This document shows positions 1-25,420 of a DNA stretch of 64,000 nt, piece by piece. Numbering within the stretch: the stretch's first letter is position 1; every line of letters begins with the position of its first letter. This stretch comes from Bispira polyomma. Its lineage: Eukaryota. The DNA is taken from assembly GCA_965649765.1 (NCBI GenBank), contig OZ287752.1, forward strand, positions 13,082,001-13,146,000, read 5' to 3'. Under the pieces are notes generated by a model. It searched no databases, was not told the DNA's origin, and saw only the letters and a list, made by a program, of their open reading frames with translations. The position numbers and the translations under genes are program-made.

Positions 1-194
1 GGTTTTACATAATGTATGGGCCACATAGTGTTTATCTATTAAAAAGCCCAACTAAAATTACATTGTTGAATGAAGTGTAAACAAATTAAATTAAGAATGC
101 TTGTTTAAATATTGTGTGATTTTAAAAAATTAATAGAAATGTCCATATACCATCGTAGTAGAGTGGCATATGTAGGGTGGTGTGCCAAATACAT

Positions 195-325
195 ATATTC
201 TATTTCTTACAAAGAATTGGATAAAGAAATAACATCTTTTGTTTCCCCTTTGCAAAAAATGTTCGCATTCAAACTAGCTTTTAATGAAAAACTTTACTTA
301 TTAATATTATTATTTCTTTCATTAT
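195..325 (-). repeat. Paralogous upstream-flank segment of the Ig receptor gene family; implies another copy left of the window
   Basis: tatttcttac...tttgtttcccctttgcaaa...ttaatatta matches the regions upstream of exon 1 in copy 1 (~4022-4140) and copy 2 (~16432-16545). Confidence 0.65.
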
Positions 326-2299
326 TTTCTTTACATGTTCATTAATTTCCAGATATCATATGTAATTCTTCTATCACTGTATAATACTGATAGACACAAT
401 ACACTAAATCTCAACCTTTCAGACGTCATATCAAATTCCCATCCTGAGTGCAGATTATTGTCATCAGTTTCACAGTAAAGCTGGACTCCATCATCATCCT
501 TGTCCACAGTGAGTTGGTACTCCAGTGTCTTGGCTATCACCACTGCTAGATGTGACGTCCTTCTAAGTCTGAACAACTTCAGTCTACCAGCAGGATTACT
601 GTTTACTTCACAAGTCAAGGTCAGCAGAGTATTCTCATTTACTGTTGAGGATAGGGAGGCTGTAGGTTCACTCACTGATAATTGTACATCTAGAATTTAA
701 CTAGTACGTAACTAAACAAGGCACAATATACCGCGAATACCATTATAAACCTATTAATCAACATCAAACTTTGGTGGAGCAAACCTTATGTGCAGAGGCA
801 TGGTTGACCCCTTAATTACCATTTAATGTAAAGCATTTAACGGTAACATAAAAAATATTGTAATGAGCCACATTATTGCTGATAATTTCTGACTATAATT
901 ACATCAGTGAGATCCTGACTAAGAATGAACAACCATATTTAACATAACAGAAAACAAAGTCAATAGTGACACTAGACTAGGTTACCGTCTCCAAACGAGG
1001 CGTGTTATTGCTGATGTTCTTGCGTATCATCAGTAAATCAAAGCATCAGTCAGGGGAAATTTCAAATATGCCAGAATCTGATTGTAGCCAATTGTTTGCT
1101 GGTTCCAGTTGATGTTTTGTGTACCTAATGTCTAGGCATACATTGTATCATAGTCAATCTATTCTCCCTTTATCTGGTATTCAAAGTGCTAATTGTGTTT
1201 TCTTCTGAACACTATCATTTATCTTCAATTTACCATTTTTAAATTCCAAATTCTAATCATGAAATGATACAAGTGTTGTCATATCTATATGCTTTTCATC
1301 ATAAAATAGGGACAGATCACACGTAAAACTTTATGGGCCGAGGAAGGCTCGTGCTAAAAATGTAACAACACTATAAGTTATAAGAAAAGTCCTTAGGACA
1401 AATGCATACCATGTACAGTTTGTTAAAAAGACTGACGTTCTCAGAAAAATGACATGAGTCTAGGGGACTTTAATGCCATATGTATACAATCTGCCTGACG
1501 TTTGGATGTGATAACACCCATCCAGCTGTATTGTTAACTGATACATAAGAAAAAGGCCTGAGAGCCATAAGTTGAGAGGCCCACTGCAGGAACTCAGACA
1601 GGAAAGCAATGTAATAGAATTCATGACATACTTACAGTACACAACTAAGGTTTCAGTGTTTGATGTGTTCACTAATTCTATTGGTCCCTCACCCTAAGTC
1701 AGTTCATACTGTACTCCTTGACCTTGCGGTTAAAGCTCAGTATCTGTGTACAAGTCACTGTATAAGTCAGGCCATTACTCACCTCACTCTCTGTCTGAAC
1801 ACCTCCACTGTAGTACTCACTGCTTACTTGTACTCTGAAGTCTGTCTGCTCTGTCCCTGGATAGATGAAGGACACTTCACACTCAATAGATTTGGGTGCA
1901 CCCTCAATTACAAAACCTATGGTAGTAACATTCACAGAATATGGAGCAACTGAAATAAATATAGTAATCTATATTTATATAATTACTTCGATGTAACAAT
2001 GGGAAACATGAGATTATGTACGATGACGTTGTGAATATAATAAACCTTAACTGTATGGTATTTTAAATGTTGAGTGATATACTAATAAGGATACTGTTTC
2101 ATGAAACATATTTACTCTATTTTACCTGGATAGATGGAGGACACTCTACACTCAATGGTTTTGGGTTCACTCTCAATTACATTATCTATGGTGGAAAGGC
2201 TCACTGAATCTGGGGCATCTGAAAAATATAAGATTTTGATGTAACAGTGTAACAGTAAAGAACAACAGAAGATGCATGATAACGTTGTGGTGACATTTC

Positions 2300-3420
2300 A
2301 GTAGTGCTGCTCTTTCTTAATTGAAGTCATATTTAGCCGACAGACCTCAAGCAGTTCAAATTGGTTCATTTCTTTCTGACTTTACTAAGCTCGAATTTGG
2401 TGTCCTCAGGGTTAGGCTCTCAGGCCAACCCTTATCTCTTTACATACTAAATCTCTTAGTCACATTTTTAGTCACTATCAAATGTTGTCACAGCTTTTGG
2501 TGACCTCAAAACTTGCCTGAAAGAGGCGAAGGAATGGCTGCTATCAAATAGCTCAAGCTTGATCCTGACAAAACATAATTTGTTGTTTTGTTTTTTTTTG
2601 TTCTAGTAAACAACCCAGTGATTTATCAATTTTGTTTCCAATAAACATCCTGGGGAATATGATATCACCTTCAGATGTTGAACGTTCAGCAAACATGCCA
2701 CTTTTGTCTGTAAATCCTGTTTTGACAGTCTGAGAGATTAAAGCCTACACTTCCTTTTTGCACATTATGACATTAGCCAATTTGTGTGTTTCTGAACCAA
2801 TTTGACATCGGCCGATGTAGCACTTCCTTTTATCAGATATTTACTAAATATTTAATAATAAAAAAAAATATTTTCTTCATTTTTGTACAAAAATAGGACA
2901 GACCTCCGATTTTTTTCCTTCAAGACAGATAAAATATGTTGGCCCAAAACATGTTGGTCGATGTCTGTTCTTATCTGATGCAAATATGCTGAAAGGAAGC
3001 ACTAGGTAGTATTGAAAAAGTGAAAAAAAATCATGCTGAAAGGAAGCGTATGGTAAGATAATTAAAAAAGTTATTTGTCACGGGATACAGCTGTGCTGTT
3101 TGCTAATGGACTTGTGAGGAGTCACACTGACTACTGTATACCCCATTCTGTAAGCAGGCTGTATGGAAAGAACATTTCTCTCCTTACAGGCTTCATGTTA
3201 AATTGTGATGTATGTTCAAAACTGACACACTCATCAACACATCTCTTAATACAGGCCTCTCGAAATACCTTAGCCCATATCTAACCCTTACTCTCAGCAA
3301 GTCAATAGCCATTGTTGTAATCCTAACAAATTGTTATGGAACCACCTATCACTAGATATTAGGAGCTCACTTTCTGTTTTAGCCTTCAGAAGCAAGCTTA
3401 AGCCCTATCTCTAACAAAAA
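2300..3420 (+). mobile_element. Degenerate L2/CR1-group LINE RT fragments interrupting Ig copy 1
   Basis: Remnant peptides KSYLADRPQAVQIG...LEFGV, LKLDPDKT and LSRDTAVLFANGLVRSHTDYC resemble the intact RT ORFs in this window. Confidence 0.75.
2742..3053. mobile_element. MITE (PIF/Harbinger-like) nested in the LINE fragment
   Basis: Imperfect ~20-bp TIRs (gcctacacttcctttttgca / tgctgaaaggaagcgtatgg) with TAA at both flanks. LINE homology resumes on either side. Confidence 0.5.
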
Positions 3421-4986
3421 GCTCTGGTCCTGTGGTCAGTAAAATAAGTAAACACACGACTTTAAGTAGATAGACTAATCCAATCAAGTTGTTTGATGTC
3501 ACTTTTAGGTAAACCAGAATCACAAACTATGGTCATTAAGTCTCCGTGTAAGACATAGAAAGTAGAGCCAGAACTGTAAGGACTTTCATAGTGAGTATTC
3601 ACTAATAATATTGATCAGATAAGACAATATATGTTATAATCTTTACAAATCTTAAAATTAACACTAATAAATGAAATACAATGGACATTATTAGATGTAC
3701 CATAAATTATATGTTATTATATATGAATTACTCACCACTGAAAAGTGTAAGCCAAAACAGCCATTGGACAATAATTTTTACTATTTAAGAAATTATAAAA
3801 AATTATTCATATTATTAGCATACATAAGTCAATGTCCCTCGATGTGTGTGGTACATGTATTATATTATACGTGGAACAAATAAGGAAGTTAATTCATAAA
3901 TACTGGATATCTAGTATCCAGGGCGCCTTTATGTCAATAGGAGTATAAGAAGTGCCACTAATATACTTAACTGCCTGATATCTGAACATATGTATATAAA
4001 TTCTGTGTTTCCAATACAATAGTCTATTTCTTACAGAAATTTAAGTACGAAACCTCATCCTTTGTTTCCCCTTTGCAAATATTCACATATTGGATTTTTC
4101 AAAAAAACTTTTTAATATTAATAATTGTTTATTTTATTAACACTCTTTATTACTTAGGATGAGAAGTGATCATCCATTTTGATTGTTAGGGTTCTGAGAG
4201 CCAGATAAGATCTAATGCAATCAAGACAGTTTTATTTAGTCCAAACCACTGTTTTAGGGCATAAAACATAAATTGGCCCATGTCTAAAGGAATAGTCTTT
4301 AAATTAGTTAATCTCATGAAACATTAGTATTGCAAGAAGACACTCCAGATAAATAGTATATTCGTCTTCAATAATAGTAACAATGCAGAAAGTTTTATTT
4401 CCTGCCGCCTATGATTTGTATAATGATGTCATACATATGTGCACTATTCTGCCATGGGAAATACTAAATGTTGACGATTTAATACACACATGCTTTGTGC
4501 AGTTTAAATTTAGTGTATTACGGGTTCATAAAAATTATGGACTGAGAATCTTTTCAGCAGGTTAGATTGGACCCTTGATTTTTCCCTCTAGGTCAATTTG
4601 CTTATAACATGCATATTATGGGTCCTTCACATTATGTTTTGATTGCGAAAGTGAGTAGCATCAGGGGATCCGTTTACTGGGTTTATTATAACAACAACCA
4701 AACCACAACAGGTCTACCTCCCCAGCTTGTCACCCTGTCAAAGTGTCAAACATTCAACCCACTGTGGGCAAGCAAACTTGTCACCTTTGTTGGCAATACC
4801 AATTAAAAATGTTCACTAGCTAGGAACTGGGTCAACACATTTTCTTGCCAAAATTCCCCACTGGGGTCAGAAAAGCCCCCAGCCTTCATTCTTGGTTTAA
4901 CTCTCTGGGTGCAAGAGGAAAAATTCCCTCCCTCCCTTTAAACTATAGGAAAGCAGTCAAGTTTAGGTCAATAGAGTTTGGACTTT

Positions 4987-7062
4987 GTGCGATGTAAATG
5001 AATGGACCAATGCTGCCATTACAGAGGCCAAAAGACGCAAACGCCAACTTGAGCGTCAATGGCAACGCACAAAATCCTCCTTAGACAGAAGCCGTTACCG
5101 TATCGCCACAAATAATTACAACAGGTTAATAACTGATGCCAAAAAGCAACACTACGACTCCATCATCACTGAAAATCAGGATAATCCCAAAAGGTTATGG
5201 GCCTCCATAAACAAAATTCTACATCGAACATCAGAGAAAGTTCTCCCCATAAACCACTGCCTTACTTTTTTAGCAGAAAAATTTGGAAAAATTTTTATTG
5301 AAAAAATCAGCAAAATTCGTGACGCCTTCCCAACGATACATCACTTCAACCCTCCAGCCCCAGGATATAAGGTTTGTAACCTGTTTCATTTTAGTACACT
5401 GTCAGAGCCTGAAGTTCTGAAACTCATCAAATCCTCTACCATTAAATCTTGTGACTTAGATCCCATCCCAGCAGTTATACTGAGTCAATGTCTTGACATT
5501 CTTGTCACACCCATAACAAATATATTAAATTTTTCTCTTCGGGATGGTGTTTTTCCCACCTGTTTCAAGACGGCAAACGTAACTCCCTTGATTAAAAACC
5601 AAGGGCTTGATAAAAACCAGCTCAAAAACTACAGACCGGTGTCAAACCTCAGCTTCGTCTCAAAAGTCATCGAGAAAGCTGTAGCTAAACAAATTTCTGA
5701 CCACCTTAATAGACAAAACATTCAAAATCGCCACCAGTCTGCTTATAGAAAATTTCACTCTACAGAAAGTGCCCTTTTTTCAATTAGCAATGATATCAAT
5801 CTTGCACTGAACCGCAATGACACAGTGGCCCTCACCCTTCTAGATCTCTCAGCTGCTTTCGACACTATTGATCATGTCCTGCTCTGCGACACTCTCAAGC
5901 AGTGGTTCGGTATAAATGGCAGTGTCCTTAAATGGATCAGATCCTACCTTACTCTTAGAGCACAAAGAATTAAACTAGATGATCACCTATCATCTTCCAT
6001 AAAACTTCCATATGGAGTACCCCAGGGATCCGTCCTTGGTCCTCTACTTTTCACCCTTTATACACATCCTCTCAGCACTGTCATCAATAAACACAATATA
6101 AAACACCACATGTATGCAGACGACACTCAAGTCTATCTCTCCCTCAATCCACAAAATGCAGATACTAACATAGACCTACTTGCAGACTGTCTGTCTGATG
6201 TCCAGGCGTGGATGAACTACTCCAAACTAAAGCTTAACCCAGAAAAAACAGAATTCATCCTCATAGGAAACAAGAAAAACAGTGAACTCCTAAAATCTTT
6301 GTTTCCCATCTCCCTGCTGGGAAAAGACCTGGGTGTCACTTTTGATTCAGCTTTTTCGTTCGATACGCATTTTGCCAACATCTGTTGCTCCTGCTATTAC
6401 CACATACGTGATATCAAAAGAATCAGAAACCACTTGTCCATGGACACAGCGATAACTGTGGCAAATGCCCTTGTGAGTAGCCGCCTCGACTACTGCAATT
6501 CTCTCTTGTACGAAGCAAACAAGTCAAACATTAAAAAGCTCCAGTCCATCCAAAACTACCTATGTAGGGTCATTTTTCGCCTGGGTTGTCGCACAGATGT
6601 CACTCCTTACCTCAAAAAATTACACTGGTTGCCCATTGAATCTCGAATTTTGTTTAAGATTCACGTTACCACTTTTAAGGCTGTAGTCACTCAACAGCCA
6701 CCCTACCTTGCCTCCCTTCTTTCCTTCAGTAACCGTAAGAGAGGAAACAGACTCTCTGTCACTTCGGTCAGACCAATCAGAAAGGCGGGTTTCAGAGCAT
6801 TCTCCACTGCAGCTCCACGGTTATGGAACAGTCTCCCAGTCGACCTCAGATCAGTTGATACGCTTATCGGTTTTAGGAAAAAGCTTAAAACCTATCGTTT
6901 TAATCTTGCCTACCCACCTTAGCTTTCCTCGTGCACGCTTCCACTTCCTTCCTTACGACTTTACAATTTCCACGGACTTAATGATTGGACTAATGATTCT
7001 GCTGTTGCGCTTTAGAAGATGCCTAGCATCAATAAAGCGCGTTAAAAATCCATAATAATAAT
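4987..7062 (+). mobile_element. 5'-truncated L2/CR1-group LINE with an open reverse transcriptase ORF (4985-6922)
   Basis: RT motifs NYRPVSNL, LLDLSAAFDTIDH, GVPQGSVLGP and YADDTQ; C-terminal LHWLPI...F..AAPRLWNSLP; short 3' UTR ending in (taa)n. Confidence 0.95.
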
Positions 7063-7886
7063 TAATTAAAATGTTAAGTCTCCATAGAGCAGGCAGCCTT
7101 TTTCAAAGCTTCTTGTTTTAGCCTTTGCTAAGGCTACACTTTATTGTTGTATTTTGTAAGGCATTAGGTTAAGTGTCCAAGCTCTGACCATGTAGTTTAG
7201 TAAGTATTTGTTATTTTTATATGTATTAGTGATTTTAGCAAATTTTATTATATACACCTTACGTTATACATTTATATTAATCATTTTAACACAATCCTAA
7301 CCTAACAACTTAAGGCCACCTTAACAAATAAAAACTAAGTCTAACTTTAAGGTTCCCTTAACCAAGTGTAGGGTCACCTTAGGACTAAGGTTAAGGCCAA
7401 AAATAGTCTAAGGACTAGTTAGTAGGGGGTGTACGAAATAACGTGTGTGTGCAATAAATAGCCCAAATGTATCATATGGTGTTTTTACTTTTCTTGTGTT
7501 TAAAGTTATCTGCTTTCCCTCACAATTCCAACCTTTCAAACTGTAACCTGGGTAAACTGGGAAATAATGGCTAGTAATCTGTTCAGCAGGTAAGATTTGA
7601 CCCTCCATCAAGATCAAATGGCTGTCTTCAATTATGTAAGGCCCTTTTTGTTTTAGGGACGTAATGTTTTGCATATTAATGGTCCTGAGGTTTGTAATGT
7701 GAAATCAATTTGCTCCAAATTATAGTCTAGGAATCTTCTGAGCATATCAAATTTAACCCGTTCTTCAAGTTCAAAAGAGTGTATCCATACTACTTATTGG
7801 TCAACAGGTTTGTGTCGTGAAATTAAGTTGTAGAAAGCCATAGGCTTAATCTTTCCACCAGGTTAGATTTGACCCTTGATCCTTCC

Positions 7887-9541
7887 CGTACATGAGGAAA
7901 GCTAAGGTGGGTAGGCAAGATTAAAAAGATAGGTTTTAAGCTTTTTCCTAAAACCGATAAGTGTATTAACTGATCTGAGGTCAACTGGGAGATTGTTCCA
8001 TAACCGTGGAGCTGCAGTGGAGAACGCTCTGAAACCCACCTTTCTGATTCGTCTGACCAAAGTGACTGAGAGTCTGTCGCCTCTCCTGAAGGAAAGAAGG
8101 GAGGCAAGGTAGGTTGGCTGTTGAGTGACTACAGCATTAAAAGTGGTAAAGTGAATCTTAAACAAAATTCGAGATTTAATGGGCAACCAGTGTAATTTTT
8201 TGAGGTAAGGAGTGACGTCTGTGCGACAACCCAAGCAAAAAATGACCCTGCATAGGTAGTTTTGGATGGACTGGAGCTTTTTAATGTTTGACTTGTTTGC
8301 TTCGTACAAGAGAGAATTGCAGTAGTCGAGGCGGCTACTCACAAGGGCATTTGCCACAGTTATCGCCTTGTCCATGGACAAGTGGTTTCTAATTCTTTTG
8401 ATGTCGCGTATGTGGTAATAGCAGGAGCGACAGATGTTGGCAACATGAGTATTGAACGAAAAAGCTGAATCAAAAGTGACACCCAGATTTTTAGCATTTT
8501 CGGAAGGTAGTATGTCTTTTCCCACCAGAGAGATGGGAAACAAAGATTTTAGGAGTTCACTGTTTTTCTTGTTTCCTATGAGGATGAATTCTGTTTTGTC
8601 AGGGTTAAGCTTTAGTTTGGAGTAGTTCATCTACGCCTGGACATCAGACAGACAGTCTGCAAGTAGGTCTATGTTAGTATCTGCGTTTTGTGGATTGAGG
8701 AAGAGATAGACTTGAGTGTCGTCTGCATACATGTGGTGTTTTATATTGTGTTTATTGATGACAGTGCTGAGAGGATGTGTATAAAGGGTGAAAAGTAGAG
8801 GACCAAGGACGGATCCCTGGGGTACTCCATATGGAAGTTTTATGGAAGATGATAGGTGATCATCTAGTTTAATTCTTTGTGCCCTAAGAGTAAGGTAGGA
8901 TCTGATGCATTTAAGGACACTGCCATTTATACCAAACCACTGCTTGAGAGTGTCGCAGAGCAGGACATGATCAATAGTGTCGAATGCAGCTGAGAGATCC
9001 AGAAGGGTGAGGGCCACTGTGTCATTGCGGTCCAGTGCAAGATTAATATTATTGCTGATTGAAAAAGGGCCCTTTCTGTAGATTGAAATTTTCTATAAGC
9101 AGACTGGTGACGATTTTCAATGTTTTGTCTATTAAGGTGGTCAGAAATTTGTTTAGCTACAGCTTTCCCGATGATTTTTGAGACAAAGCTGAGGTTTGAC
9201 ACCGGTCTGTAGTTTTTGAGCTGGTTTTTATCAAGCCCTTGTTTTTTGATCAAGGGAGTTACATTTCGGGAGTTACATCCCGAAGAGAAAAATTTAATAT
9301 ATTTGTTATGGGTGTGACAAGAATGTCAAGACATTGACTCAGTATAACTGCTGGGATGGGATCTAAGTCACAAGATTTAATAGTAGAGGATTTGATGAGT
9401 TTCAGAACTTCAAGCTCTGACAGTGTGCTAAAATGAAACAGGTTACAAACCTTATATCCTGGGGCTGGAGGGTTGAAGTGATGTATCGTTGGGAAGGCGT
9501 CATGAATTTTGCTGATTTTTTCTATAAAATTTTTTCCAAAT
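7887..9541 (-). mobile_element. Second, near-identical copy of the same LINE in inverted orientation (stop codon, frameshifts, both ends truncated)
   Basis: ORFs 7902-8630, 8631-9017 and 8927-9253 are nearly identical to 4985-6922; TGG>TAG at 8631-8633. Confidence 0.93.
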
Positions 9542-10343
9542 TAGAGAAAGCTCCAGGTCCAGCCCTGTTGGTAGTTTTCCCTTCTTAAGGTTTCTGAGAG
9601 AAATGCGCGCAGCAAGGTAGGATGCAGGGAGAAAGCACCTTTGAATGTGGTTACATGGATTTTAAACAAGTATGCATTCTGAGACTGTCATTTTAAAGTT
9701 ATAGCCACTGCAAATTATCTGTTACTACATGGCATTGACTTCGGGTTGTCAGAAGGGTAGATTTTGATGTTGACTTTCTGTGGTTTGTACAATAATTAGA
9801 TCACTCCAGTAGATTGATACCAGTATATTTTAACACTGGAACACTACATTACTTCGAAATTATTTATTCTTTTTAAAACATTTCAGAAGTCAAAACCAGA
9901 ATCATAGATGACTATGGTGATACAGATTGCTAAATTTTCAGTAAACATATTTCCTTTACCTAAAGTAAAATATGAGTCTCATGACCTCTTGTGATGCACC
10001 ATTATTGATGTTTGGTGCTCCAGGTTAACAAAGTTCAGTTTGAAATTTAAAATATTATTTAATATCAAGATTATATAACAAAGTATGCAGATTATGAATT
10101 ACTAAAATTAAGATTTAATCTTAGTAAACTATATGTACGGCTTATTGTCATCTATGAACAGGATACACAGCAGACCCCAGTCCAGTTATAAATTAAGTAC
10201 ATGCAATATGTTATCACAACAATTTTGTAACATCTAAGTATCCAACATTCATTAAGTATATACACAGCTGCTATCCTTGTTATATACATGTATCGGTTAA
10301 GTTCTGTTCTTCTGTACATCTGTAGGGTACAAGCAGCAGATCC

Positions 10344-10584
10344 TCAGTTAATTGTTTCATATGTCACTTGCTGCAATGACAATGTTAAAATCAATTTAAA
10401 CAATTCTTTTCACACCAAGTTATGATATTTAGATATAATTATTTGAGGATTATCAATAATGTGGTGGCCATACCTTCAAATCTGTGTACTCAGCTGGTGG
10501 TGTTGGTTCTTCTGGTTTTGCCATCTCATAGTTACTGATTTCATGTGTAGATGTGACATTTTCATATGTTGTTGGACTTTGATT
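10344..10584 (-). CDS. Cytoplasmic tail exons of Ig copy 2 with tyrosine motifs
   Basis: 10474-10584 encodes NQSPTTYENVTSTHEISNYEMAKPEEPTPPAEYTDLK|gtatgg; 10344-10370 is gcag|QVTYETIN TGA. Both exons have paralogs, with matching splice sites, at 22520-22630 and from 22374. Confidence 0.8.
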
Positions 10585-13500
10585 CTTAAAAATATGTCAC
10601 AATTAAATAACACCATGTTACCAGACGGAACTAATGTAAAAATACTCAAAGAAAGGGACAAACATTACACAAACTATGTTTTCAACTAGTATGCAATTCT
10701 GTTAAACGTAATGCTATGCTTTTTATGACTTACTGAAGTCCCTTTGGTAGTGTCAGCATTTTGGTTCTGGCTCCTCCTCAACAAAATCAGGGCAACTGTG
10801 AGAAAACCAACTATGGTAGACAGAACTGCTATTCCTGCTATTAGTCCGGTGTCTTTATTTGTAACGATATCTGAAGAAAGAGCCAAAAAAGGAACCTTGA
10901 AATAAAGCTTGCAATTCTAATTAATAATCGTGTTTAGTGTTAAATTCATACAAATTGTATACTTTTGTAGTGTACAAATTTTGTTATTGTATAGGACAGA
11001 TATGTTGCCTTTCACAGGTCAACTTACTTTTGTCCCTCATACTAAATTGCTGGGCTGTTACTTCATCAGTATCCTGATATATTACAAGGTAATACTCCTC
11101 TCCATCATATATTGTGCCCACTGTATATATTGTAACATTGGCATCAGTAATCTAGTAAATTGAAATGCAATTTTGTCGTCCATTGTTACACTTCAATAAA
11201 GCAGCTCTTGTGTAGTTTCCATCTATGTGTTCCCAGTACAAGGCCACAATCTCATCATATATATTTGCCTTCAATAACCCTCTCACAGATGGTAGACCTT
11301 AGATAAAGCAAAAAAAAATAACTACAACTCCAAGGTAAATGATGTAATGGTGATTTCTTTATATTTTTATTCAAATGTATATATTTATTGGTATTTAAAG
11401 TGTTTTCTTGACTCCTCAAGTACAGCAAATCAGTAGTGCTGCTCAAGACTGCTCACGACAGAGGATTATTCATTTAATAATGTTGTCAACATTCCTGAGC
11501 CACTAGGAATATGACAAATTTCTTCTGTCCTCTGTGTACCTAAGCGAGCAACCCACCCACTTTGCAACAGTGGCAAATTTGTACATTATACTATTTTACT
11601 TAACTATGTCCCCCTTGCATATTACCAATTGGTGTCTATGTAATATACAAAAATATCATAATATCAGTAAAAAAATATATTGGGAATATATTTTAGTTTT
11701 ATAGCTCCTTGGGTAAAAATATACATTTATTGAATAATTATAGTTGCACAGCCAAATACATGCTGGTACCTAAAGTTGTAACTGATATCTCTGGCTGGTG
11801 ATCACTTTCTCCATATTGGTTTTGAGCTTGAACCCTAAAGAAATACTCTGTATCAGATAATAAATTTGACACTTTGTACATAGTTCTCTTGCTATGTTCA
11901 CTGGTCTGAATTTCATCATAATACAGTATTTTAGTGTCCCCTTGATGTCTGTAATACACTGTAAATGTTTGTGTTACAGGACTCCTGCCGGCAATCCATG
12001 ACATAGTCACTGATATGGCAGTTATTGACTCAATTATAAAGGAGTGTGGTGGCTCTGGAACACCTGAAACACATGAAATAGGAAAGACTTACCAATAAAC
12101 ATAACTAACACTAAAAATGTTAGTAATTATCAATATTAAAAGTCAGTATGAGGGATTAGTACACTCCTATTTTGTACTATTCTGTTAGCATACCTGTTGT
12201 TCCGAAAACGTTGCCCGGTCGCATCTTGTTTTTTTATAGTCCCTGACCTTGATTTTCTAGATACACTCACAGTACATTAGCAGGATGGAAAAAAATTAGA
12301 TATTTTATAAACCCTAAAACATTCAATTTAAAATTTGACCATAGTAAAACATACCTCTTTCCAGTAACTCCAATGAAAAACTAACAGGCTGTTGAATACC
12401 ATTAGTCACAGTAACTGTATACACTGTGTAGTCTTCTATTTGTACGGTATTTATCACCAGTTCAGAAATAAATACTTCATCACTCATTTTTCTTGAATTC
12501 ACGCCATCAGTGATACTTGATCCACCAACTTTGCTCCACATAAAGGCTGCTACAATGTCACTAAACTCAGGAAAAGCTCTCACTGTGACAGTAAGAGTGA
12601 CTTGTTGATTTAGTCCAGCATAGAAAATCACAGTATCTCTACTGAGAAAAAGTGGTGGATCTGAAGGTACAGTGATATAAGTAGGATACACTAAATGTAA
12701 AACAGATAGCAATGTAATGTAATTCCTACAGTACACATATACAGTTACTTACAATGTACAACAACTTGTATCCCTCCTGTATCACTGCCCACTGTATTCC
12801 CTGCAGTATATCTATAAGTCCCTGCATCAGTGTACACTGCCTTCTCTATACTCAGCTCTGCGTTCTCTATCTGATCTGGTAGAGCCTGAGATGTGGTATC
12901 CTCATATTTAGGTTCAAACTCCCATAATTGGCTTGTGATTTCCACAGGGTTACCAACCTTAATGTTACAGCGAATAGCAAGTTCTGACCCTTCTTCTATT
13001 GTGATTGATGCAGTTTGAGCTGCTATGTCTGGAGGATCTGATTGAAAAGAAACATTACAAAAAACATTTAATGTAATACAAAATATGGTAATAAGACATG
13101 AAATAATCAGGGTATAATTTTTGTAAATATTTTTTCTGCCATTTAACGGCAGAAACATTTTCAGATTACATCTAATGACCAGCAATGCTTATAGTATAAG
13201 GCAAAGTTTTAAAATACAATGTGTGTTCATCTAAAAACATTTTCATATTACATCTAATGACCGGCAATGCTTATAGTATAAGGCAAAGTTTTAAAATATA
13301 ATGTGTGTTCACCTAAAACAAAAATCTAGATTGTCCAACTAATAATTATTCGTAATAAACAGTATTGCAGAAATGTTATAAGTTTAAAATCACCCTAAAT
13401 TCAACAGTTTTACTTTTTCTTCAGTAACTGTTTCAAGATACATCCTGGCTAATATACTTTTGATGGGTTTAAAGTTTTCTATGGGATGTGGTAAAATATT

Positions 13501-16194
13501 GTGTCAATAACATTACTATTTAGAACCACAACATAATGTGAATGACGGGTAACATGTAGTTAGTGACTTTTCATTCCTAAAAGTAGAAAATGAAAATAGG
13601 TTTACATGTCTATTAAATCCAAAATATGTAATTCTTCTATAACTATATAATTATAATAGATGAAACTTACACAATACACTAATTCTCAGCCTTTCAGACT
13701 CCACATAAAATGTCCACCCTGAGTGCATATTATAGTCATCAACTCTGCAGTAAAACTGGGCTCCATCATCATCCTTGTCAACAGTATGTTGATACTCCAG
13801 TGTTTTGCCTATCACCACTGCTACACGTGTAGTCGTTCCAAGTCTGAATAACTTTAATCTACCGGCAGGATTACTGTCTACTTCACAAGTCAAGGTCAAC
13901 AGAGTATTCTCATTTACTGTTGAGGATGGAGAGGCTGCAGGTTTACTCACTGATGATGGTACATCTGGAATTTGACAAGTACTTAACTGAATAAGGCACA
14001 ATATTACCCTGAAAACCATTATGAACCTACTATATTTGGTATAGCAAACTTCGACTGCAAAGGTATGATTTAAGCCTTAAGTAGAATTCAATGTGTATCA
14101 GTTATTCTGATTAAAAAAATATATTTGGCTAAGCCTATACAAGCAATAGTAATGTAAACAAAACTTTTTGTAAATCCAGCTACTCCACAAAACAAGTCAA
14201 GGTCTGTTATTTTGTCGATAGTGTGCACACTCTCATTAGAGTCACCCTAAAGTGACTTCAGTTCACAAAACACCCTATACTCTAGTTTGTGTGGTAGCTC
14301 TGAGAGGCTAGTATGGTGTGTGTTATATATTGGACAACAGTTGACTAAATTGATAAAACTGTTGGACATGTAGTATTCTCGTATTCATCTTTATCTGCCA
14401 TTCAAACCACTAGTTATTTTATTTTACTTTTGAACACTATCATTTATCTTCCATTTTTTAAAATGCAAATCCTAGTCATGGAGTGATATAAGTGTAGTTA
14501 TGCCTATTTACTTTTTATCATGAAAGAGCAAAAGAGTACCAGTAAAATTGATAGGCCGAGACAGGCAAATGCTAAAACAATTGTATTCTAGAAACCAAAA
14601 TATGACCACTATAAGAAAACTACTTGGGACAAGTTCATACAATATAATAACGATAAAAAGACACACCTGGCTGTTGGATGTACCAGCTAGGTATTGCGAA
14701 CTAATATATAGAAAAAATGCCTGAGGCCTTAACTGATGTTTTGAGTACATTTGATTTTAAAACTGATTCTTCAGTGTAGCAAATCTACAGTTCATATATG
14801 CAACAATTTTGAAACATTTTATGTAGAGCACCTTGTGATTTGGTAGCTCTACACAATCTACATACATATCATATTTTCATGTTTTATCATGGTTATTAGC
14901 TTCATGTCTTACACACCACTAAGTGACATATTAGTTTGTTGATGACACACCAATAAACACAATGCTGAAAGAATGAGCTCTAGCCTTACACAGGAAAGCT
15001 ATGAAAAACAACTTCATGGCATACTCACAGTACACATCCAGGGTTTCAGTGTTTGATGTTTTCACTACTTCTATTGGTCCCTCACCCCAAGTCAGTTCAC
15101 ACTGTACTCCTTGACCTTGCTGAGCACGGTTAAAGCTGGGTGTCTTTGTATAAGTGACTGTATAAGTCAGGCCATTACTCTCCTTAATCTCTGTCTCAAT
15201 ACCTCCACTGTAGTACTCACTCCCGACTTTTACTCTGAAGTCTGTCTGATCTTTACCTGGATAGATGAAGAACACTCTACACTGGATGGCTTTGGTTACA
15301 CCCTCGATTACAATACCTATGGTAGAAAGGCTCACAGAATCTGGAGCATCTGGAATAAATATGGTAATGCATATATAATACATAGTTCAAACCTTTCAAT
15401 GTCACAATAAAAAACATGAAAATTTGTATGTGACATTCAAAAGTAAAACTCAAAGAAATGTGTATATAAATGTTGATCAATATACTATTGGGATACTGCT
15501 TCATAAAACACATTTAATTTATATAATAAGAATAGTTCAAACTAGAGCTACTGTACCCCAAATTTCCCCGGTCAAATCCAACACCTTATTTCCTTCATCT
15601 CGGGAACCTGTAGTCTGTACCTGACATAGATACTTTAGACCATCAGTCAGTATATCCACATCATGTACACTCAGCCTGTATTCTGTACCACTGAACTCAT
15701 ACTCTACATCTCTCCCAATGAACTCATTCTCCAGTTTACTCTTGCTATCTGGTCTGTAGTAAGTAAACACACGATTTAAAGTAGCTTGATTAAACCAGTC
15801 AAGTTTTCTGATGTCACTTTTAGGTAAACCATAATCACAAACTAGGGTCATTGAGTCTCCGTGTAAGATGTAGAAAGTAGAGCCAGAACTGTAAGGACTT
15901 TCATAGTGAGTAGTCACTAATACTTCTGCATATACTACTAACCTCTATGAAACGACAAGTTGATGTAGAGTTATTAGGCATATTTGCTGGCTTCACTGAA
16001 TCCATATATGTGTATATTTTTTATGTGTCAGTAATATTGATCATACAAGACAATACATGTTATAATCGTTACTAATCTTAAAATCTACACTAATAAATGA
16101 AACACAGTATTAGATGTACTATAAATTATATGTTACTATCTATTAATTACTCACCACTGAAAAGTGTAAGCCAAAACAGCCATTGGACCATCAT
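10344..16194 (-). CDS. Ig-superfamily type I membrane receptor copy 2: SP, V-set Ig, 4 Ig, 2 FN3, TM, ITSM/ITIM-like tail
   Basis: Exons: 16155-16194 (MMVQWLFWLTLFS); ~15557-15916/15945 (V-set, acceptor ambiguous); 15029-15349; 13671-13964; 12753-13037; 12355-12660; 11770-12063 (FN3); 11028-11297 (FN3, internal TAG); 10734-10870 (TM); 10474-10584; 10344-10370 (QVTYETIN*). Exons 3-8 are phase 1-1 with lengths divisible by 3. Confidence 0.85.
11028..11297 (-). CDS. Second FN3-like exon of Ig copy 2 (missed by the ORF track); in-frame TAG at 11152-11154
   Basis: tctaag|GT CTA CCA...; reads GLPSVRGLLKANIYDEIVALYWEHIDGNYTRAALLKCNNGRQNCISIY*ITDANVTIYTVGTIYDGEEYYLVIYQDTDEVTAQQFSMRDK|gtaagt. 270 nt; homolog at 23078-23240. 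Confidence 0.75.
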
Positions 16195-16739
16195 ATTTAC
16201 TGATTAAGAAATTATAAAAAATTATTCATATTATTAGAATACATATGTCTATGTCCCTTGAAGTGTGGATTGCATGTATTATAGTATACGTGGAACAAAT
16301 AAGGAAGTTATTTCGTAAATACTGGATATCCCAAAGGGGTACCTTATGTCAATAGAAATATGAAGACGGCAAATGTTGTACTTGAGTGTTTAATATCTAT
16401 ACATATGTATATATATTCTGTGTTTACAATAGTGTATTTCTCACTGAATTTGAAGTACAAAACCACATCTTTGTTTAGCTTTTGCAAATATCCGCATTCA
16501 AGCTTTGTGCTGAAACACTCTACTCATTAATATTATTAATATTCTTTTTGTATATTTTTGGTTTCCATCACATAATTCTCACAATGTACATCTGTACATT
16601 TTAGTACAACAACAAAATACATACATATAACTATGTTGTTGAAACAAAAGCAAAGAAATTTGATGTAAAACTCACAAAAGCTCAATACATAAAGCATGTA
16701 AAACTGATACGTAACTATTTATATACTCCCAGTTCTATA

Positions 16740-19700
16740 AACTGGAGATGCCAGAGCGTTAAGATTTTAAGCAATGACATTTGTAGCTCTCTGGTTGGTT
16801 GTTTTGTTAGGCTTTTTTAGTGCAGTCTAGGATGCCTGGGAGTCGCCCCCAGGGTGAACTTGTAACTGAGTTTTGAGGATTTCATACTCTTTAAGGACTC
16901 CACTTACTGTCTCCCCTCATCATAAACGTAAGGTGGAGTGTTGGTGCCACGTAAATTGTACATTTTACTTATTGTGCTCACAAACATAGCTATTGCACGC
17001 CGCATCAACTGTCACAAAAAGTTATCTATACCACTTCAGATACAAACAACATCAAGAAAGCGATACACATCAAACAGTCTGGTGTCTGTAACAAAGTAAA
17101 AAATCATTTTCCGCCGGTTGCCAATACCATAAACCTAAGTCTTATCTTGCTCCTTTGTGGTGATGTCTCTCTAAACTCTAAATACCTATTAAGTTTGGTA
17201 TGGTGAACTGCCGTTCCATCTGGAAAAAAGCCCGGTCATGCAAGATAATGTGAATGCCGTCAAATATGATATTTTTGCCATCACAGAATCACACATTAGG
17301 TTAACTGACACGCCTGCTTTTCTCAGATCACTAACTCCAGTTGACTACAATCTTGTTCAAAGACCACGTCAGTCTGGGCTGGGTGTTGGTGTAGGCGTTT
17401 TTGTCAAAACTAATTACAACTTCAAAATAATCAGTAGTCCATATTATACTACCTTTGAAAATATAATCATAACAGCTGCTTTTCCAGATTATAGCTTGTC
17501 TTTTGCATGTATTTATCGGCCACCTACTTCCAATATGGCAAGTTTTCTGGATGAATTCTTATCATATGAGTTTTCTCAGCTCTGCCAGCTCCTCATTTGT
17601 GGTCAGTGGTGAATTCAATATTCACAATAATTTTAGCTCTATTCTGGATTCCTGCAATCTAACTCAGTATATTTCCACTTCCACCCACATTCATGGTCAC
17701 ATCTTAGACCTCATTCTAGCTCCCACAGATCTTGAGTAAGTTAGAAATACTAGGTGCTCGGATTTCATATCTGATCATGTAGTTGTTTCATGTGACGTCA
17801 ACGTAATACATCAAACTGAATCAGTCAAGCGTACTGTCACTTTCAGGTGTTATCATTGTATTGACATGTGCAAACTAAAGTATTACCTGTCTACCATTCC
17901 CTTTGGCATAGACCCCTGCAAAAATGCTACTGATTTGTTTATTTAATACATCAGTGACCTTAAACTCTTACTTGACAGACATGTCCCGGTAATAACTAGA
18001 TTACCAAAAAAACAGCATTAAAATGGGTTACTGAAGCATACCGCACAGCTAAAGCACTGTGCCGTCAATATAAAAGAGCCTGGCGAAAGGAGAGGGGTCC
18101 ACTATACAGATCCAGTATAAAGAAACAGGTTGCATGGTGCAATAAATTTTTAAATAGAGCAAAAAAAATCACTATAAATCAGTCATTCACAAAACAGACA
18201 AAACCTCTGGCAAGAATTGCGCAGAGTCCTCCATACCACACCCGAGTCCATCCTTCCAGCATTTAAATCAGGAAAATCTCTAGCAGAAAAATTTGGGATT
18301 TTCTTCAGTGAAAAAATTCAGAATATCAGAAACATGTTCTCTGGCTCAAATACATGTTGCATCCCCCCTGCCAGACCTCCACCGAATTTCTCTGGCTTTA
18401 CCCAAGTTTCACAAGATGAAGTCCTAAAAACTATTAATGAATCCCCTACTAAAACCTGTATGTTAGACCCCTGGCCAACCTTTCTGGTGAAGGAATGCAT
18501 CGATATACTTCTACCTATCTTCTATCACTAGACTTGTCAACCACTCTCTTGCATATGGTATTGTACCTGATAAATTTAAACAAGCTGTAGTTACTTCCCT
18601 TATAAAGAAACCAGTATCAGGCCTAAGTTTCATCTTTAAGTTAGTGGAAAGAATTGGTGCAAAACAAATAACAAAACATATCAACAAAAATGGTTTAGAA
18701 AATCGCCTGCAGTCTGCTTATAAACAGGGACATTACACTGAAACAGCCCTTCTATCCATCAAAAATTAAGTACATATATCTCTTTCAAGAGGTGAATCTA
18801 CAGCACTAGTCCTCCTCAACCTATCAGCAGCTTTCGATACCTTTGATCATGCTACCTTGCTTGAATACTTGTCATCTTGGTTCGGTTTTCATGGTACACT
18901 TCTCGAATGGTTCACTTTATATTTCTCAAGTCGACGTCAGTCTGTCAAAATAGGCTCCACTCTGTCAGATTTGTTAAAGCTTGAGTTTGGTGTTCTACAA
19001 GGGTCAGTTCTGGGCCCAATCTTGTTTTTTTTGTACACTACTCCGCTCAGCTATATCAATAGCAAACATAGCAATATCAAGCACCACTTTTATGCTGATG
19101 ACACATAGCTGTATGCTCATCTCTCATATAAAAATGCCGCAACTTTTCTCGATAATCTAACAAGTTGTCTCCGTAATGTTAGAAAATATAATGCCAACAA
19201 GCTTAAACTAAACCCAGACAAGACTGAGTTCACACTATTTGGATCACAGGCTGATAGATTTAAGGATTTTTATCCAGTCAATATTTTAGCAAACAAGTTG
19301 TACCCTGCCAGTGTTGTCAAGAACCTGGGTGTGTGGTTTAATTCTATGTTTTCCTTCTCCAAACAATTTCATGAAGTTTGCAAATCTTGTTTTATCAAAA
19401 TTAGGGATCTAAGAAGGGTTAGGCGCTATTTGTCAGCCAGTACTGCTACTATAGTTGCAAATGCCCTGGATACAAGTCAACTGAACAACTGTAATTCTCT
19501 TTATAGAAGTTTTTTCAAGGCTGACATCTGTAAGTTGCAATGCATCCAAAACTCGTTAGCCAGACTGGTGGCCAACCATTACAAATACTTCCGTGTAACT
19601 TAACGGTCTTAAGAAGTCTCCACTGGTTACCCATTAAGTTTAGATGTATGTTCAAAACAGCTACTTTGGTCAACAAATTCTTAAATTATGGCCTTCCAGC

Positions 19701-20094
19701 ATACAGGAATCCATACCTCACACCTTACACATGCAGTTATATTACCAGAAGCAGACTGGAAAAAGTTACCTCACCATACCAAGATTTATCTCAGCAGTAC
19801 ACAAATCTAAACGTCAGTTTAACAACAGCTTTGCCTGTGAAGCTGCAACACTCTGGAATAGACTACCTGCCGAAGTTCATTGTGCAACCTCACTCACATC
19901 CTTTAGAAAAAGACTTAAAACCTACCTATTCGACAAGGCTTTTCCACCTTAGCCCTAAATTCATTGGGGTCTCCATGGTGCTGACCCATGCTTGTCTCAC
20001 GAAAATGCAAATTGAATAAGTATACTGTTTGCGCCTTATAATCTCCTAAGAAGGAGAGATTTAGCACTATAAAAGTTAGATTAGATTAGATTAG
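16740..20094 (+). mobile_element. Degenerate, near-full-length L2/CR1-group LINE (APE endonuclease + RT) with (TTAGA)n tail
   Basis: APE motifs VNCRSI, DIFAITESH, IYRPP, G(E)FNIH, THIHGHILDL and SDH; RT motifs GVLQGSVLGP and YADDT; many stops and frameshifts; ttagattagattagattaga at ~20076-20094. The 5' boundary is approximate. Confidence 0.9.
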
Positions 20095-20989
20095 ACAGAT
20101 CAGTTACCTAGGACAATGTTGGGTCTATAAAAGTAATGTTAAGGCATTAGGTTCAGGGCAAAAGTATATACCATCCAAAATAGAATTTTAAAGCCTAATA
20201 AGAACTATATTTAATTATATTAATTCAGGGTTTAAATTTTAAGACCAATTATAACAATTTATGTTTACTGTAATATTTAATTTCAAGTTCTATATTACAC
20301 ATCACATTATACATCACATATCTAAATAGTCTTTTAATTAGTTGGTCTCATGAAACATTAGTAATACAATAAATTTGTAATAATACTGAAGTTAATGCAG
20401 ATAAATCCTGAAGAATATTCGGCTTCAATAACAGAAACGCTGCAGGCTGTATTATTTGCCACAACCTCAGATTTGTGTAATGGTGTAATACATGTGTGCA
20501 CTAATTTGCCGTGGAAAATACCAAATATTTATGCTGTAGTACACACATGCCCTGTACACTTAAAATTGGGAGTATTTGAGTTTGTTTTGAAAAAACTGTA
20601 TAATTTTAAAAATTATCGACTGAGAATCTTTTCAGCAGGTTTGATTTCACCTTTGATTCTCCCCTTTAGGTCAATTGCCTTATAGCTTGCTTATTATGGG
20701 TCCTTCACATTAGGAAACCATGGCTGGGAATCTAGTCAGCAGATAAGATTTGACCTATGATACTCTTTCAAACTCAAATGGCTGCCTCCATAAATTTAAG
20801 GCCCTTTTCTTTTGAGGTCTTGCTTATTGTTTTCAATACTACTAAAATTTTAGTAATTTCAAAAATTATATTATCTTATTGAAGCTTATATATTGCAGTT
20901 ATAATTGATTTGACACCATAAAAAGACCATTGATGCGAGACACAACAACAGTATCAATTATCTAATCAACAAGTCAAAAAAAACAGGGG

Positions 20990-21390
20990 AGTGTACAGAG
21001 AGGGAACTAAGGTGAATGAGCAAATTTGAAGAGATAGATTTTAAGACTTTTAAAACTTAGAACGTGTTTTAATTGATCTAAGCTCAACTGGGAGAATATT
21101 CAATAACATAGGGGTAATATAGAAAATCTCTAGGTCCAGCCCTGTTGGTATGTTTTATAGAGGAAAAGGAAAGTCACTTTCAATTCTTACGGATGCTAAA
21201 GGAAAGGTGAGCAGCAAGGTAGGAGAGATGTTGTGAGATGACAGCTTTGAATGTGGTTACATGGATTTGAAACAAAATTCAATAGTGAATAGGAAGTGAA
21301 TGTAATTTGTTGAGGTAAAGAGAGACTTTAGTATAGAACCACAGACAAAAAATGATTTTACACCAATAGTTTTTAGTAGACTGTAACTAG
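20990..21390 (-). mobile_element. Old L2-like 3' fragment shared with the paralogous unit (~9545-9670)
   Basis: Remnants such as LHSLPIHY..LFQIHVTTFKA; ccagccctgttggta...ttgaatgtggttacatggattt is present in both units. Confidence 0.6.
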
Positions 21391-22236
21391 TGGCAGCCAT
21401 CTTGCTTTTTAAAATGAGACCAAAGTTCAGCAGAAGCAGGAATTTATAGTAATAAACATCTTTTGAAATTTGGTGAGGCTACCTGCAATAGCAAAGTGAA
21501 GTACAATCTGTTTGAACCTAACTGCATCTAAACAAAGGTATCTACCAGATGTCAAACACATTATGACTAGGTTCAAAATTTATTAAAAATATATTGATAG
21601 ACACTTGACCGTTACACATTTGGAGTTAGTAAAGTTCAAAAAAAAATTCTATATGCTTTTGCAAATATGGTTTCAACTTAGATTTTAAAATCATTGGAAG
21701 TAATTATTCTGAGATTGGCAGAGTCATTGAAAAGTTTTAGCCACTTTAAATTTTCTGTTTGTACACGTAATTGACTTTGGGTGTGAGGTGATCTGACTTT
21801 GATAAGTGTTGATTCTCTGTGGGTTGTACAATAATTAGGTCATTTAAGTAGTTTGGTGCCAGTAAATTCTAACATTGGAACACTACAACATTTACTTGAA
21901 ATTAATTACTCTTTTAAAATAATTTTGACTCTTTTTAAAGTCAAAAACAGAAGCATAATTGACTATGGTATAAAGATGGTTGAATTTTATTTAAACTATA
22001 TTTACTTAACTCGTACAGTAATAAAGTAAACTATGAGTCACATGACCTCGAATGCTGCTCCAATAATCATGCATGATGTTCCAAGTTAAAAAAAAGTTTA
22101 TTTAATATTAAGATTTTACAACAAAGTATGCGCATATGCATGGCATATTTTCATCTATGAACAGGGCGCCCAATAAACTGAGGTCCAGTTATTACTTCGG
22201 TGCTGTAATATGTTATCACAAAAATGTTTCTAACAT

Positions 22237-23561
22237 TTAAGTATTTAAAGTTGTATCATTAAGTATATACACAGTTGCTATCATTGTTATATATGTTTTG
22301 ATTAAGTTCTTTTCTTCTGTACATCTGTGAGGTTCAAGCAGCAGATCCTCAGTAATTGGTTCATATGTCACTTGCTGCAATAACAAGGTAATACACATTT
22401 ATAGTATCTGACTAAAAATAATAAGTTGAGTTAAAGGCAATTTAAACAAATTTTTGCACAGTAAGTTTTTATATTTGCATGTAATTGTTTGAGAAGTATC
22501 CATTATGTGATGGCCATACCTTCAAATCTGTATACTCAGCTGGTGGTGTTGGTTCTTCTGGCTTTGTCATCTCATAATTACTGATTTCATGCGTAGATGT
22601 TACATTTTCATATGTAGTTGGACTTTTATACTAATAAATATGTGACAAATAAATAACAACATGTCACAAGAAGAAAATGTAAGTAATGTAAACACACATT
22701 ACATATGGCACAAACTATGTTTTCAATGATGCAAGTGTTTAAACATAATCTTTTGTTTTTGATCACTTACTGAAGTACATTTAGTGGTGTCACCATTTTG
22801 GTTTTGTCTCCTTCTCAACAAAACAATCAGTATAATTAGGGCAACGGTGAGTAAACCAACCATGATAGACAGAACTGCTATTCCTGCTATTAGTCCAGTG
22901 TCTTTCTCTACACAAATATCTGCAGAATGGGCTGAAAAAAAGAACTTTAAAATAAAGCTTACAATTCTAAACAATAATCCTGTGAAGTGTTACATTATTA
23001 CAAATTGTGTACTTTGTGTGTACAAGTTCTCTTATCCTATATATGACAAATATTTTGTCTTTTACATGTCAACTTACTTTTGTCAGTCATTCCAAATTGC
23101 TGGGCCATTACTTCATCAGTATCCTGATATATTATAAGGTAGTACTCCTCTCCATCATAAACTGTGTCCACTGTATATGTTGTAAGATTGGCATCAGTAA
23201 TATTGTAATTGTAGTTGGACATAGTAGACCATTCATTGCAATGTAATTCCTACAGTGCACCTATATAGTTACTCACAATGTACAACAACCTGTATCTCTC
23301 CTGTATCACTCCCTACTGCATTCTCTGCAGTATATCTATAAGTCCCTGCATCAGTGTATACTGCCTTCTCTATAATCAGCTCTCTGTTCTCTCTCTGGTC
23401 TGGTCGAGCCTGAGATGTGGTATCTTCATATTTGGGTTCAAACTTCCATAACTGGCTTGTGATTTCCGCAGGATTACCAATCTCAATGTTACAGCGAATA
23501 ACAAGTTCTGACCCTTCTTCTATTGTGATTGACGCAGTTTGAGCTGCTATGTCTGGAGGAT
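22237..23561 (-). pseudogene. Ig-superfamily receptor copy 3 (3' half only: Ig4, partial FN3-2, TM, tail)
   Basis: Open Ig4 exon 23277-23561; truncated FN3-2 23078-~23240; TM exon 22771-22919; tail exon 22520-22630; last exon from 22374 with a 1-nt deletion moving the stop to 22237. No upstream exons were found before the DIRS/ISL2EU block. Confidence 0.8.
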
Positions 23562-23714: not shown

Positions 23715-25420
23715 CTTTTCAGCGTGTCTAGGTTTAAATAGTATACAGACTAGCTGTGACATAAATAGTATAGATGTTAATCAGTCCAGTGTAAGCTGGG
23801 CTTTTGCTGATAACTATTCAACCGGTACTAAGATTCTTAACAGTAGTGACTGGAAGAATAGTGATCAAAATAGTTGGGAGACAATTTATGATACTAAGGG
23901 TACTCGTCGGGTACATATTAGGAACAGTACTGAAGGGCACACACAGACTAGCTGTGAAACAGCTAGCACATATTCACAGTTAAGTCTCAGTTATAGTACA
24001 ATGCTTGACATTAATTCCATAGACTGTAGTTTACAAACTGAATCACAGGACCAAGGACCAAGGACCAACGTCAGCATACCCTTTGGCCTACGCTCTGGCC
24101 CATGTGCCTGCCAAATGACAACGGACGGAATTATATATCTTATGTTGAAAAATAACCATTGGTGTTATTCGTATCTGGAAGACTGCATAAGAGTTGCGCC
24201 TCCAGGAAAGGCTAACAATGCCTTTATCACACTAAAAAATCAAATTCTCAATCTCGGGTTACCAATAAATCAAGATAAGGTAGATGCACCCACTGAAAGC
24301 TTGACATGTCTATGTATCAATATTAATGCCAAAACAGGAATATTGACTATACCTGTGGATAAATTATTAGATGCAAAACAATTGTGTGAACAATGGTCAA
24401 CAAAAACTAGGGCTACCAGACGGAGTCTACAAAAACTACTGGATAATTTACTTTATATCCACCTCCCCCCCCCCCCCCCTAATGTTTCTATAAGGCTAAC
24501 AGATGATTTCTGCAAAGACAGTAATTGGTTTTGCCAATACCTAGACGAGTACAATGGTATTACGGCTATGCACAGAGTGTCAGAAATTACACACCACATA
24601 TTTGTGGATGCCTCTCTAAGAGCGATGGGGTTTTTTTGGAACAATAAAGTTTACTCGGTGTACATTCCACAAGAATATCACAATGCATTGAGTATTGTTC
24701 ACTTTGAGGTGGTGAATATTGTGGTGGCGTTTCGCTTGTGGGCTAAGCAATGGGCCAATTTAAAAGTCGCTGTGCACTGTGATAATATAGCAGTGATTCA
24801 TGTCCTTAATAGGGTGGGTTGTAGGGATGGCTTCTTGAATGCCTGTGCACACACACTATGGCTATTACAAGCAAAACATAACATAGATGTTTCCATAGAA
24901 CATATTAGTGGGGTCACAAATATTTTTGTTGATATCCTTTCTCATTGGGCGCACTATGGTGGCACAAATAAGACAGAAGTAACATTCCTTAAAAATTACA
25001 ATTCGCACCACGTTGGTCAGGAATTACTGATCCCTAATTATAACATTTAACTTTGTAGGTAATCCCCTGGCGAGAGACTTATTACAAGGGGTCAACGTGC
25101 GTGTTCAGTCCGGGTTCAGACCACGAACCTCCACAGCATACAAGGCAAAGTTCAGACTTTACATGGCCTTTCTTACAAAACTACAACTTACTTCTCCTCA
25201 TAACCTTCAATCTGTATTGATGTTCGTCGAGTACATGGCACAGCAAGGGCTTAGGTCCCAGACTATAACAGGGTACTTGGCAGTGCTTAGGCACTTTTAC
25301 AAGATTTATAACTTCCCCACACAGGGCTTGCCACACAGGAAGCTAAGTTTGATGTTAAAGTCAATAGCAAGTAATGCCCTCCTTAAGTATAAGGTGAAAG
25401 GGGTGTTTACAGTCAGACAA
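23715..25420 (+). mobile_element. DIRS-type (tyrosine recombinase) retrotransposon fragment: RT-RNase H ORF 24001-25050 and YR N-terminus 25097-25420
   Basis: RT motifs PFGLRSGP and YLED; RNase H motifs FVDAS, EVVN, HCDN and HISGVTNIFVDILS; followed by RPRTSTAY...GLRSQTITGYLAVLRH, typical of the YR N-terminal domain. Boundaries are approximate. Confidence 0.85.

Follow-up and report, generated by a model that had tools for sequence, protein, structure and literature searches.

Receptor clusters that diversify and carry inhibitory motifs of the immunoreceptor tyrosine-based type (ITIMs) have already been described in vertebrates, in a tunicate (FcoR) and in a cnidarian (Alr). For lophotrochozoans, the limited, open-access literature we searched offers one example, a single gene in the oyster, and describes no such family in annelids. 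The oyster protein, CgNCAM1, has three immunoglobulin (Ig) domains, a fibronectin type III (FN3) domain and two ITIMs; it binds microbes and recruits SHIP2, so an Ig-FN3-ITIM protein can work this way in a lophotrochozoan (PMC11841013). Here we analyze a 64,000-nucleotide stretch of the annelid Bispira polyomma (the window; C5:13,082,001-13,146,000 of the 1.04-Gb assembly), which holds a tandem group of receptor-like genes. The window probably holds decaying outliers of a large family, restricted to this lineage, of type-I Ig superfamily (IgSF) recognition receptors with inhibitory-type tails, which would recruit SH2-domain phosphatases and be engaged in an arms race.

Comparing the window with itself reveals three minus-strand, head-to-tail paralogs between positions 330 and 23,714, plus the flank of a fourth, the arrangement proposed in the original prediction. 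The eleven exons of copy 2 are bounded by AG/GT, and those of the ectodomain are without exception in phase 1-1. The predicted splicing from a signal peptide (SP) to a tyrosine-motif tail is thus borne out. The order is SP, V, C2, three Ig domains, FN3, an unclassified 90-residue domain, a transmembrane segment (TM) and a 60-residue tail encoded by two exons (T1 and T2):

16155..16194, minus strand, signal-peptide exon (ATG at 16194, 40 nt, phase 1; paralogs share the exon with its ATG)
15557..15922, minus strand, V-set Ig exon (donor conserved in paralogs; residue 1 is the codon at 15917)
15029..15349, minus strand, C2-type Ig exon (CD80-like C2-set)
13671..13964, minus strand, Ig3 exon (Pfam)
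12753..13037, minus strand, Ig4 (I-set) exon (Pfam; F-strand Cys replaced by Tyr)
12355..12660, minus strand, Ig5 (I-set, no Cys) exon (Pfam; conserved acceptor)
11770..12063, minus strand, FN3 exon (Pfam fn3, E 6e-13)
11028..11297, minus strand, membrane-proximal 90-residue beta-domain exon (FN3-like by position only; symmetric exon)
10734..10870, minus strand, TM exon (helix without a charged residue)
10474..10584, minus strand, tail exon T1 (TTYENV, SNYEMA, AEYTDL)
10344..10370, minus strand, last exon T2 (terminal ITIM VTYETI, then stop)

Pfam and other searches of copy 2 were run exon by exon. Pfam supports Ig3, Ig4, Ig5 and one FN3 domain and matches V only weakly. The structure model of V has a V-set fold with strands A'BCC'C''DEF, and its best fold matches are V domains. 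Residues C27, W41, R69, D92, Y96 and C98 of V are invariant, which marks the distal domain as V-set. Two FN3 domains had been claimed for copy 2, of which the Pfam match confirms only the first; the second has no FN3 profile or fold match. This last ectodomain domain drew no match from Pfam, hhalign, Atlas, Foldseek or VIA. Its model contains seven predicted strands, but with a predicted local distance difference test (pLDDT) score of 56. It carries a conserved cysteine pair (window 11028-11297; L042:2296-2562; L049:19188-19454) and recalls the Fn3-like region of Hydractinia Alr proteins. The Ig5 acceptor also needs correction, to 12660, which is conserved; the AG at 12690 exists in copy 2 only.

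The copy 2 tail has tyrosines at residues 22, 34, 48 and 56, in TTYENV, SNYEMA, AEYTDL and VTYETI, and the motifs originally quoted for it are present. Shuffling the 60 residues yields at least one ITIM plus at least one immunoreceptor tyrosine-based switch motif (ITSM) in 0.14% of cases (P=0.0014). The ITIM consensus [ILVS]xYxx[ILV] is matched by VTYETI in copy 2 and most paralogs, and by ITYEVV, VNYDNI and LTYETL in a related species described below. A strict ITSM is not supported. Although copy 2 and most of its close paralogs carry TxYxx[VI], the threonine at -2 is not conserved (A, A and Q in tails of the relative, V in L046) and the core is [ST]YENV. An immunoreceptor tyrosine-based activation motif (ITAM) was considered for the copy 2 tail and rejected, as its YxxL and YxxI lie 4 residues apart. 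The TM has no charged, adaptor-pairing residue in family members or in the relative. Y22 and Y48 are 26 residues apart, a spacing that we take to resemble the tandem-SH2 sites of SIRP-alpha and PD-1.

Copy 2 itself does not look like the working receptor first proposed. Its reading frame is interrupted by a TAG at 11154-11152, codon 684 when the conserved Ig5 acceptor is used, where paralogs have K, N or T. The second, F-strand cysteine of Ig4, kept by several paralogs and by the sister species, is a tyrosine. The exon with the TAG, 11028-11297, is symmetric, so skipping it would preserve the reading frame. But this exon is also interrupted by stops, at different codons, in three further paralogs, and one carries a frameshift, a pattern that fits repeated decay better than a switch. 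In public DNA contigs, introns are single-copy and exons have many-fold depth. Copy 2 is most likely a young pseudogene; otherwise it would be an exon-skipped receptor or a secreted ectodomain.

The family extends far beyond the window. We searched the genome exon by exon, and all exon counts are therefore lower bounds: 26-32 V, 140 C2, 47 Ig5, 74 FN3, 32 TM and 64 T1 matches. Nearly all lie on C5 between 10.6 and 27.4 Mb; further members lie at C5 46, 64 and 70 Mb, C6 14.4 Mb and C11 48 Mb. In total there are 60 or more loci, mostly on C5, which answers the genome-wide paralog count called for earlier. This copy number excludes a one-to-one ortholog relationship with a single-copy adhesion gene. 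Stops interrupt few matches family-wide (7/74 FN3 and 3/64 T1). Locally, at C5 12.96-13.17 Mb, there are about 12 heads and about 10 tails; this cluster includes many pseudogenes with independent lesions, broken by long interspersed nuclear elements (LINEs) and deletions. Its sole member open in every exon examined is the gene at C5 12.991-12.999 Mb, about 85 kb left of the window, which is 70%, 98% and 95% identical to copy 2 in V, Ig3 and T1. Across the family the architecture is SP-V-C2-Ig(n)-FN3-FN3-like-TM with a short four-tyrosine tail and an uncharged TM, and pseudogenes are frequent.

Heads and stalk/tail modules have apparently been exchanged between genes, as judged from match coordinates and identities rather than from reading the sequences concerned. 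Genes at C5 17.0-17.55 Mb are 73-85% identical to copy 2 in FN3 and mostly 81-89% in the tail, with mostly only 28-47% in C2 and no detected V. Conversely, heads at 19.03 Mb, 70.67 Mb and C6:14.48 Mb are 67-76% identical in V and only 35-47% in FN3 exons, and two of these three loci have no T1 match. A member at about C5 21.14 Mb matches Ig5 at 37% and C2 at 47-50%, again with no T1 match.

Exons have also been duplicated within genes. T1 is tandemly duplicated at C5:17329564/17329789 and 21576854/21577081, which would double the signaling motifs. Members at C5 11.99-12.07, 20.6-22.2, 25.02 and 27.44 Mb have three to five tandem C2 exons, so stalk length varies through exon duplication.

Outside this genome, relatives are scarce. 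A V-profile search of 1.84 billion proteins found strong single-domain matches (E<1e-20) in one other assembly only, ENA ERZ22147071; weak matches were generic multi-Ig proteins. The Ig5 exon had no named homolog in a length-limited protein search, and the FN3 exon had only generic titin/Dscam/PTPR matches. The ERZ22147071 genes are likewise tandemly arranged and encode V, C2, Ig domains that vary in number, FN3, the odd 90-residue domain, TM and tail; one has a stop in its last ectodomain exon. Three tails keep all four tyrosines and end in ITYEVV, VTYEGM or VNYDNI. Identity in these tails is 29/36 at Y, Y+1 and Y+3, compared with 38/98 elsewhere. The fourth gene (L052:11523-15349) combines a type B head with another tail type, in which a duplicated exon carries YEN (AYEN) in both copies and the ITIM is LTYETL.

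We compared paralogous exons of each type using our own implementation of GY94 site models. For nine V exons of type A, the likelihood-ratio test (LRT) statistic was 41.8 for M2a/M1a, with omega 5.9 on 9% of sites, and 41.5 for M8/M8a; seven V exons of type B gave an LRT of 17.1. The C2 LRT of 4.4 was not significant, nor were the values of about 0-1 for Ig4, Ig5, FN3, the last ectodomain domain and T1. Simulated nulls, including mosaic trees, reached at most 6.4, and removing the V exons of broken genes left a V LRT of 28.0. Under M0, omega was near 0.7 for C2, Ig4 and the last domain, 0.27 for FN3 and 0.31 for Ig5. The selected V sites, K38, K59, K61, L97, Q99, T103 and R106 in copy 2, map to strands C, C'' and F and the FG loop of the V model. 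Omega was 1.65 on the front face and 0.50 in the rest of V when split by predicted strands; because this split was chosen after the sites were known, it describes the selected sites and does not test them independently. Positive selection thus acts on the GFCC'C'' face of V, and no other exon tested shows any.

These results agree with the original prediction that the receptors form a lineage-specific family, have inhibitory-type tails and evolve by birth and death: there are dozens of paralogs and independently broken pseudogenes, selection is confined to V, and the tail tyrosines are kept in a second species. The receptors would have an inhibitory function and an immune role. The V face would bind a fast-changing outside ligand, whether a microbial adhesin, a microbial surface or a self marker that varies. 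Receptors clustered by their ligand would have their tails phosphorylated by a Src-family kinase. SHP-2 or SHIP could then be recruited by the terminal ITIM and by the AEY[TA]DL and YENV sites, with Grb2 at YxN, and the recruited SHP-2 or SHIP would damp an immune or epithelial response. Microbes that exploit or evade the receptor would drive the turnover of V faces and of genes. The same CC'C''FG face diversifies in Xenopus Ceacam inhibitory receptors and in pathogen-bound Ceacams (PMC5112662).

Several points weigh against this reading. Two of the tail motifs, YENV and YE[ML]T, do not match the inhibitory consensus. A search for activating-type tails had been proposed, and no activating twin was found: all tails read (about 12 in this genome and 4 in the relative) are ITIM-type, with no ITAM or charged TM among them in either species. 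The codon models are self-implemented, use 6-9 paralogs and give naive site posteriors. In neural wiring, too, adhesion codes rely on this V face.

The best-surviving rival, which we consider unlikely, is that these genes are polymorphic determinants of self-/allorecognition or gamete recognition, in which V would bind homophilically or to a self marker, with 'self' signaled through the ITIM tail. V-V binding uses the face that is under selection here. A distal V, an Ig stalk, and FN3 plus a disulfide-bearing beta domain near the membrane resemble the 41-gene Alr family, as do the pseudogenes, exon shuffling and multi-Mb complex (bioRxiv 10.1101/2022.03.04.482883). But Alr V domains lack the core Cys/Trp, whereas C27, W41 and C98 are invariant here, and no sequence similarity to Alr or FcoR surfaced in the V-profile protein search. 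The diversity measured is also between paralogs rather than alleles; three DNA runs, from one study and probably from the assembled animal, are identical in 603-nt pieces covering half of the V exon.

It is quite unlikely that the family instead serves as a neural or developmental adhesion code that expanded from a gene of the Sidestep/nephrin type and whose tail tyrosines dock Nck/Grb2-type adaptors for cytoskeletal signaling. A V domain followed by a CD80-like C2 domain, as in this family, is typical of the Sidestep/nephrin group, and YENV is a Grb2-type site. Five Ig domains plus FN3 are also the Sidestep layout (PMC10084454). An omega far above 1, roughly one intact copy in 12 locally, and relatives in one sister species only fit such a code poorly. 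The final residue of the tails, behind the ITIM, is N, G, E or H, unlike the C-terminal PDZ-binding motif of Sidestep, and the family is not a conserved low-copy gene with named orthologues, given 60+ paralogs and strong V matches limited to that one sister species.

Mostly neutral duplication in a repeat-rich region, with the selection signal an artefact of gene conversion and pseudogene decay, would suit a 12.96-13.17 Mb cluster made largely of pseudogenes broken by LINEs and deletions and the M0 omega near 0.7 for C2, Ig4 and the last domain, but is very improbable given the rarity of stops in FN3 and T1 matches, the low omega of FN3 and Ig5, selected sites on one face, mosaic-tree nulls far below the observed LRT, and architecture and motifs conserved in another species.

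For the recognition-receptor family favored here, the window itself represents the death side of gene turnover. None of its three copies is intact. Besides copy 2 it contains:

396..3775, minus strand, copy 1, 5' half pseudogene
22330..23561, minus strand, copy 3, 3' half fragment
180..347, minus strand, upstream flank of a fourth, broken copy (71% identical to 4005-4155)
4985..9542, two inverted LINE (reverse transcriptase) copies between copies 1 and 2

Copy 1 has an SP exon (3775-3736) without ATG, half a V exon (3607-3433) with a TAA, a duplicated C2 fragment (2218-2126), a frameshifted C2 (1949-1636) and an Ig3 (689-396) that has lost its donor. Copy 3 retains Ig4 (23561-23277), a remnant, to 23078, of the last ectodomain exon, into which a deletion extends from the Ig4 intron, TM (22919-22771), T1 (22630-22520) and T2 (from 22374, with an altered end). 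No V, C2 or Ig3 match to its 5' half occurs in the window between 23.7 and 64 kb. A frameshifted SP-V-C2 head at C5:13172056-13172934, 67 kb upstream of copy 3 and with no Ig3 or tail match nearby, is possibly that separated half. The SP and V of the fourth gene lie 0.7-1.2 kb left of the window (L010).

The young LINEs at 5280-6937 (plus strand) and 7887-9542 (minus strand) are about 1 kb apart and 92.7% identical; the plus-strand copy has a 645-residue reverse transcriptase open reading frame (ORF). A third, decayed LINE lies upstream of copy 2 at about 17000-20090. The expected site of the 5' half of copy 3 is occupied by transposon remnants (24001-27100), among them an ORF at 25097-25426 that carries an integrase SAM-like domain and by eye looks DIRS-like and, at 26254-26679, a DDE_Tnp_4 piece. 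Farther along, a block of seven units repeated in tandem (48455-54390), each about 847 bp long and 98% identical, lies within a spliced gene with a vWA-like exon (59490-59777) whose homologs are all unnamed. An intronic LINE with a 635-residue reverse transcriptase ORF occupies 55425-57332, and a four-copy tandem repeat of 147 bp occupies 60267-60851. A tRNA-derived repeat of about 250 bp, resembling a short interspersed nuclear element, occurs at 25715-25967, 31616-31873, 37792-38051 and 41743-41961, and is present in the sister species too.

The family bears on whether animals in general have arrived at a variable head joined to a conserved inhibitory tail, and on what these invertebrates recognize with it. 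Its sixty-plus genes, with selection limited to the putative ligand face, supply named sites and genes for testing generality. It is possible, though doubtful, that C5 holds an annelid counterpart of the leukocyte receptor complex, with dozens of germline receptors in which positively selected V heads have been recombined onto inhibitory and activating tails, and that paired receptors evolved independently in Lophotrochozoa. The match tables show similar V+C2 heads on dissimilar stalks and tails.

We know of no FN3 domain in CEACAM/SIRP/CD300-type families, and we detected no sequence homology between them and the present family. The two share a distal V diversifying on the CC'C''FG face, an ITIM/ITSM-like tail, clustered species-specific expansion and exchange between genes, which here is judged from match tables (PMC5112662). 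The Drosophila Sidestep/nephrin type is similar in having five Ig domains followed by FN3 and V followed by C2-set, but the present family adds a membrane-proximal domain, has no PDZ-type end, has 60+ copies rather than 8 and is under strong positive selection (PMC10084454). CgNCAM1 is likewise a lophotrochozoan type-I protein with Ig, FN3, TM and ITIM tail; compared by description, it differs in having three Ig domains and one FN3 and in being described as one gene, with no cluster or selection reported (PMC11841013). Alr comprises tens of IgSF genes in a multi-Mb complex with V, Ig and Fn3-like domains, tyrosine-motif tails, pseudogenes and exon shuffling. The core disulfide and Trp are often missing from its Ig domains, its tails diverge more than its ectodomains and ITAMs are common, whereas the present family has a canonical V and it is the tail that is conserved (bioRxiv 10.1101/2022.03.04.482883). 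Botryllus FcoR is an invertebrate IgSF multigene family with ITIMs and other tyrosine motifs and intergenic recombination, but each FcoR gene is arranged head-to-head with a fester-family gene, and hemITAMs are among the motifs (PMC12582321); the present genes are mostly head-to-tail, with no partner gene seen in the window. The best reading is that the family works like CEACAM/SIRP, Alr or FcoR while being a member of none of them.

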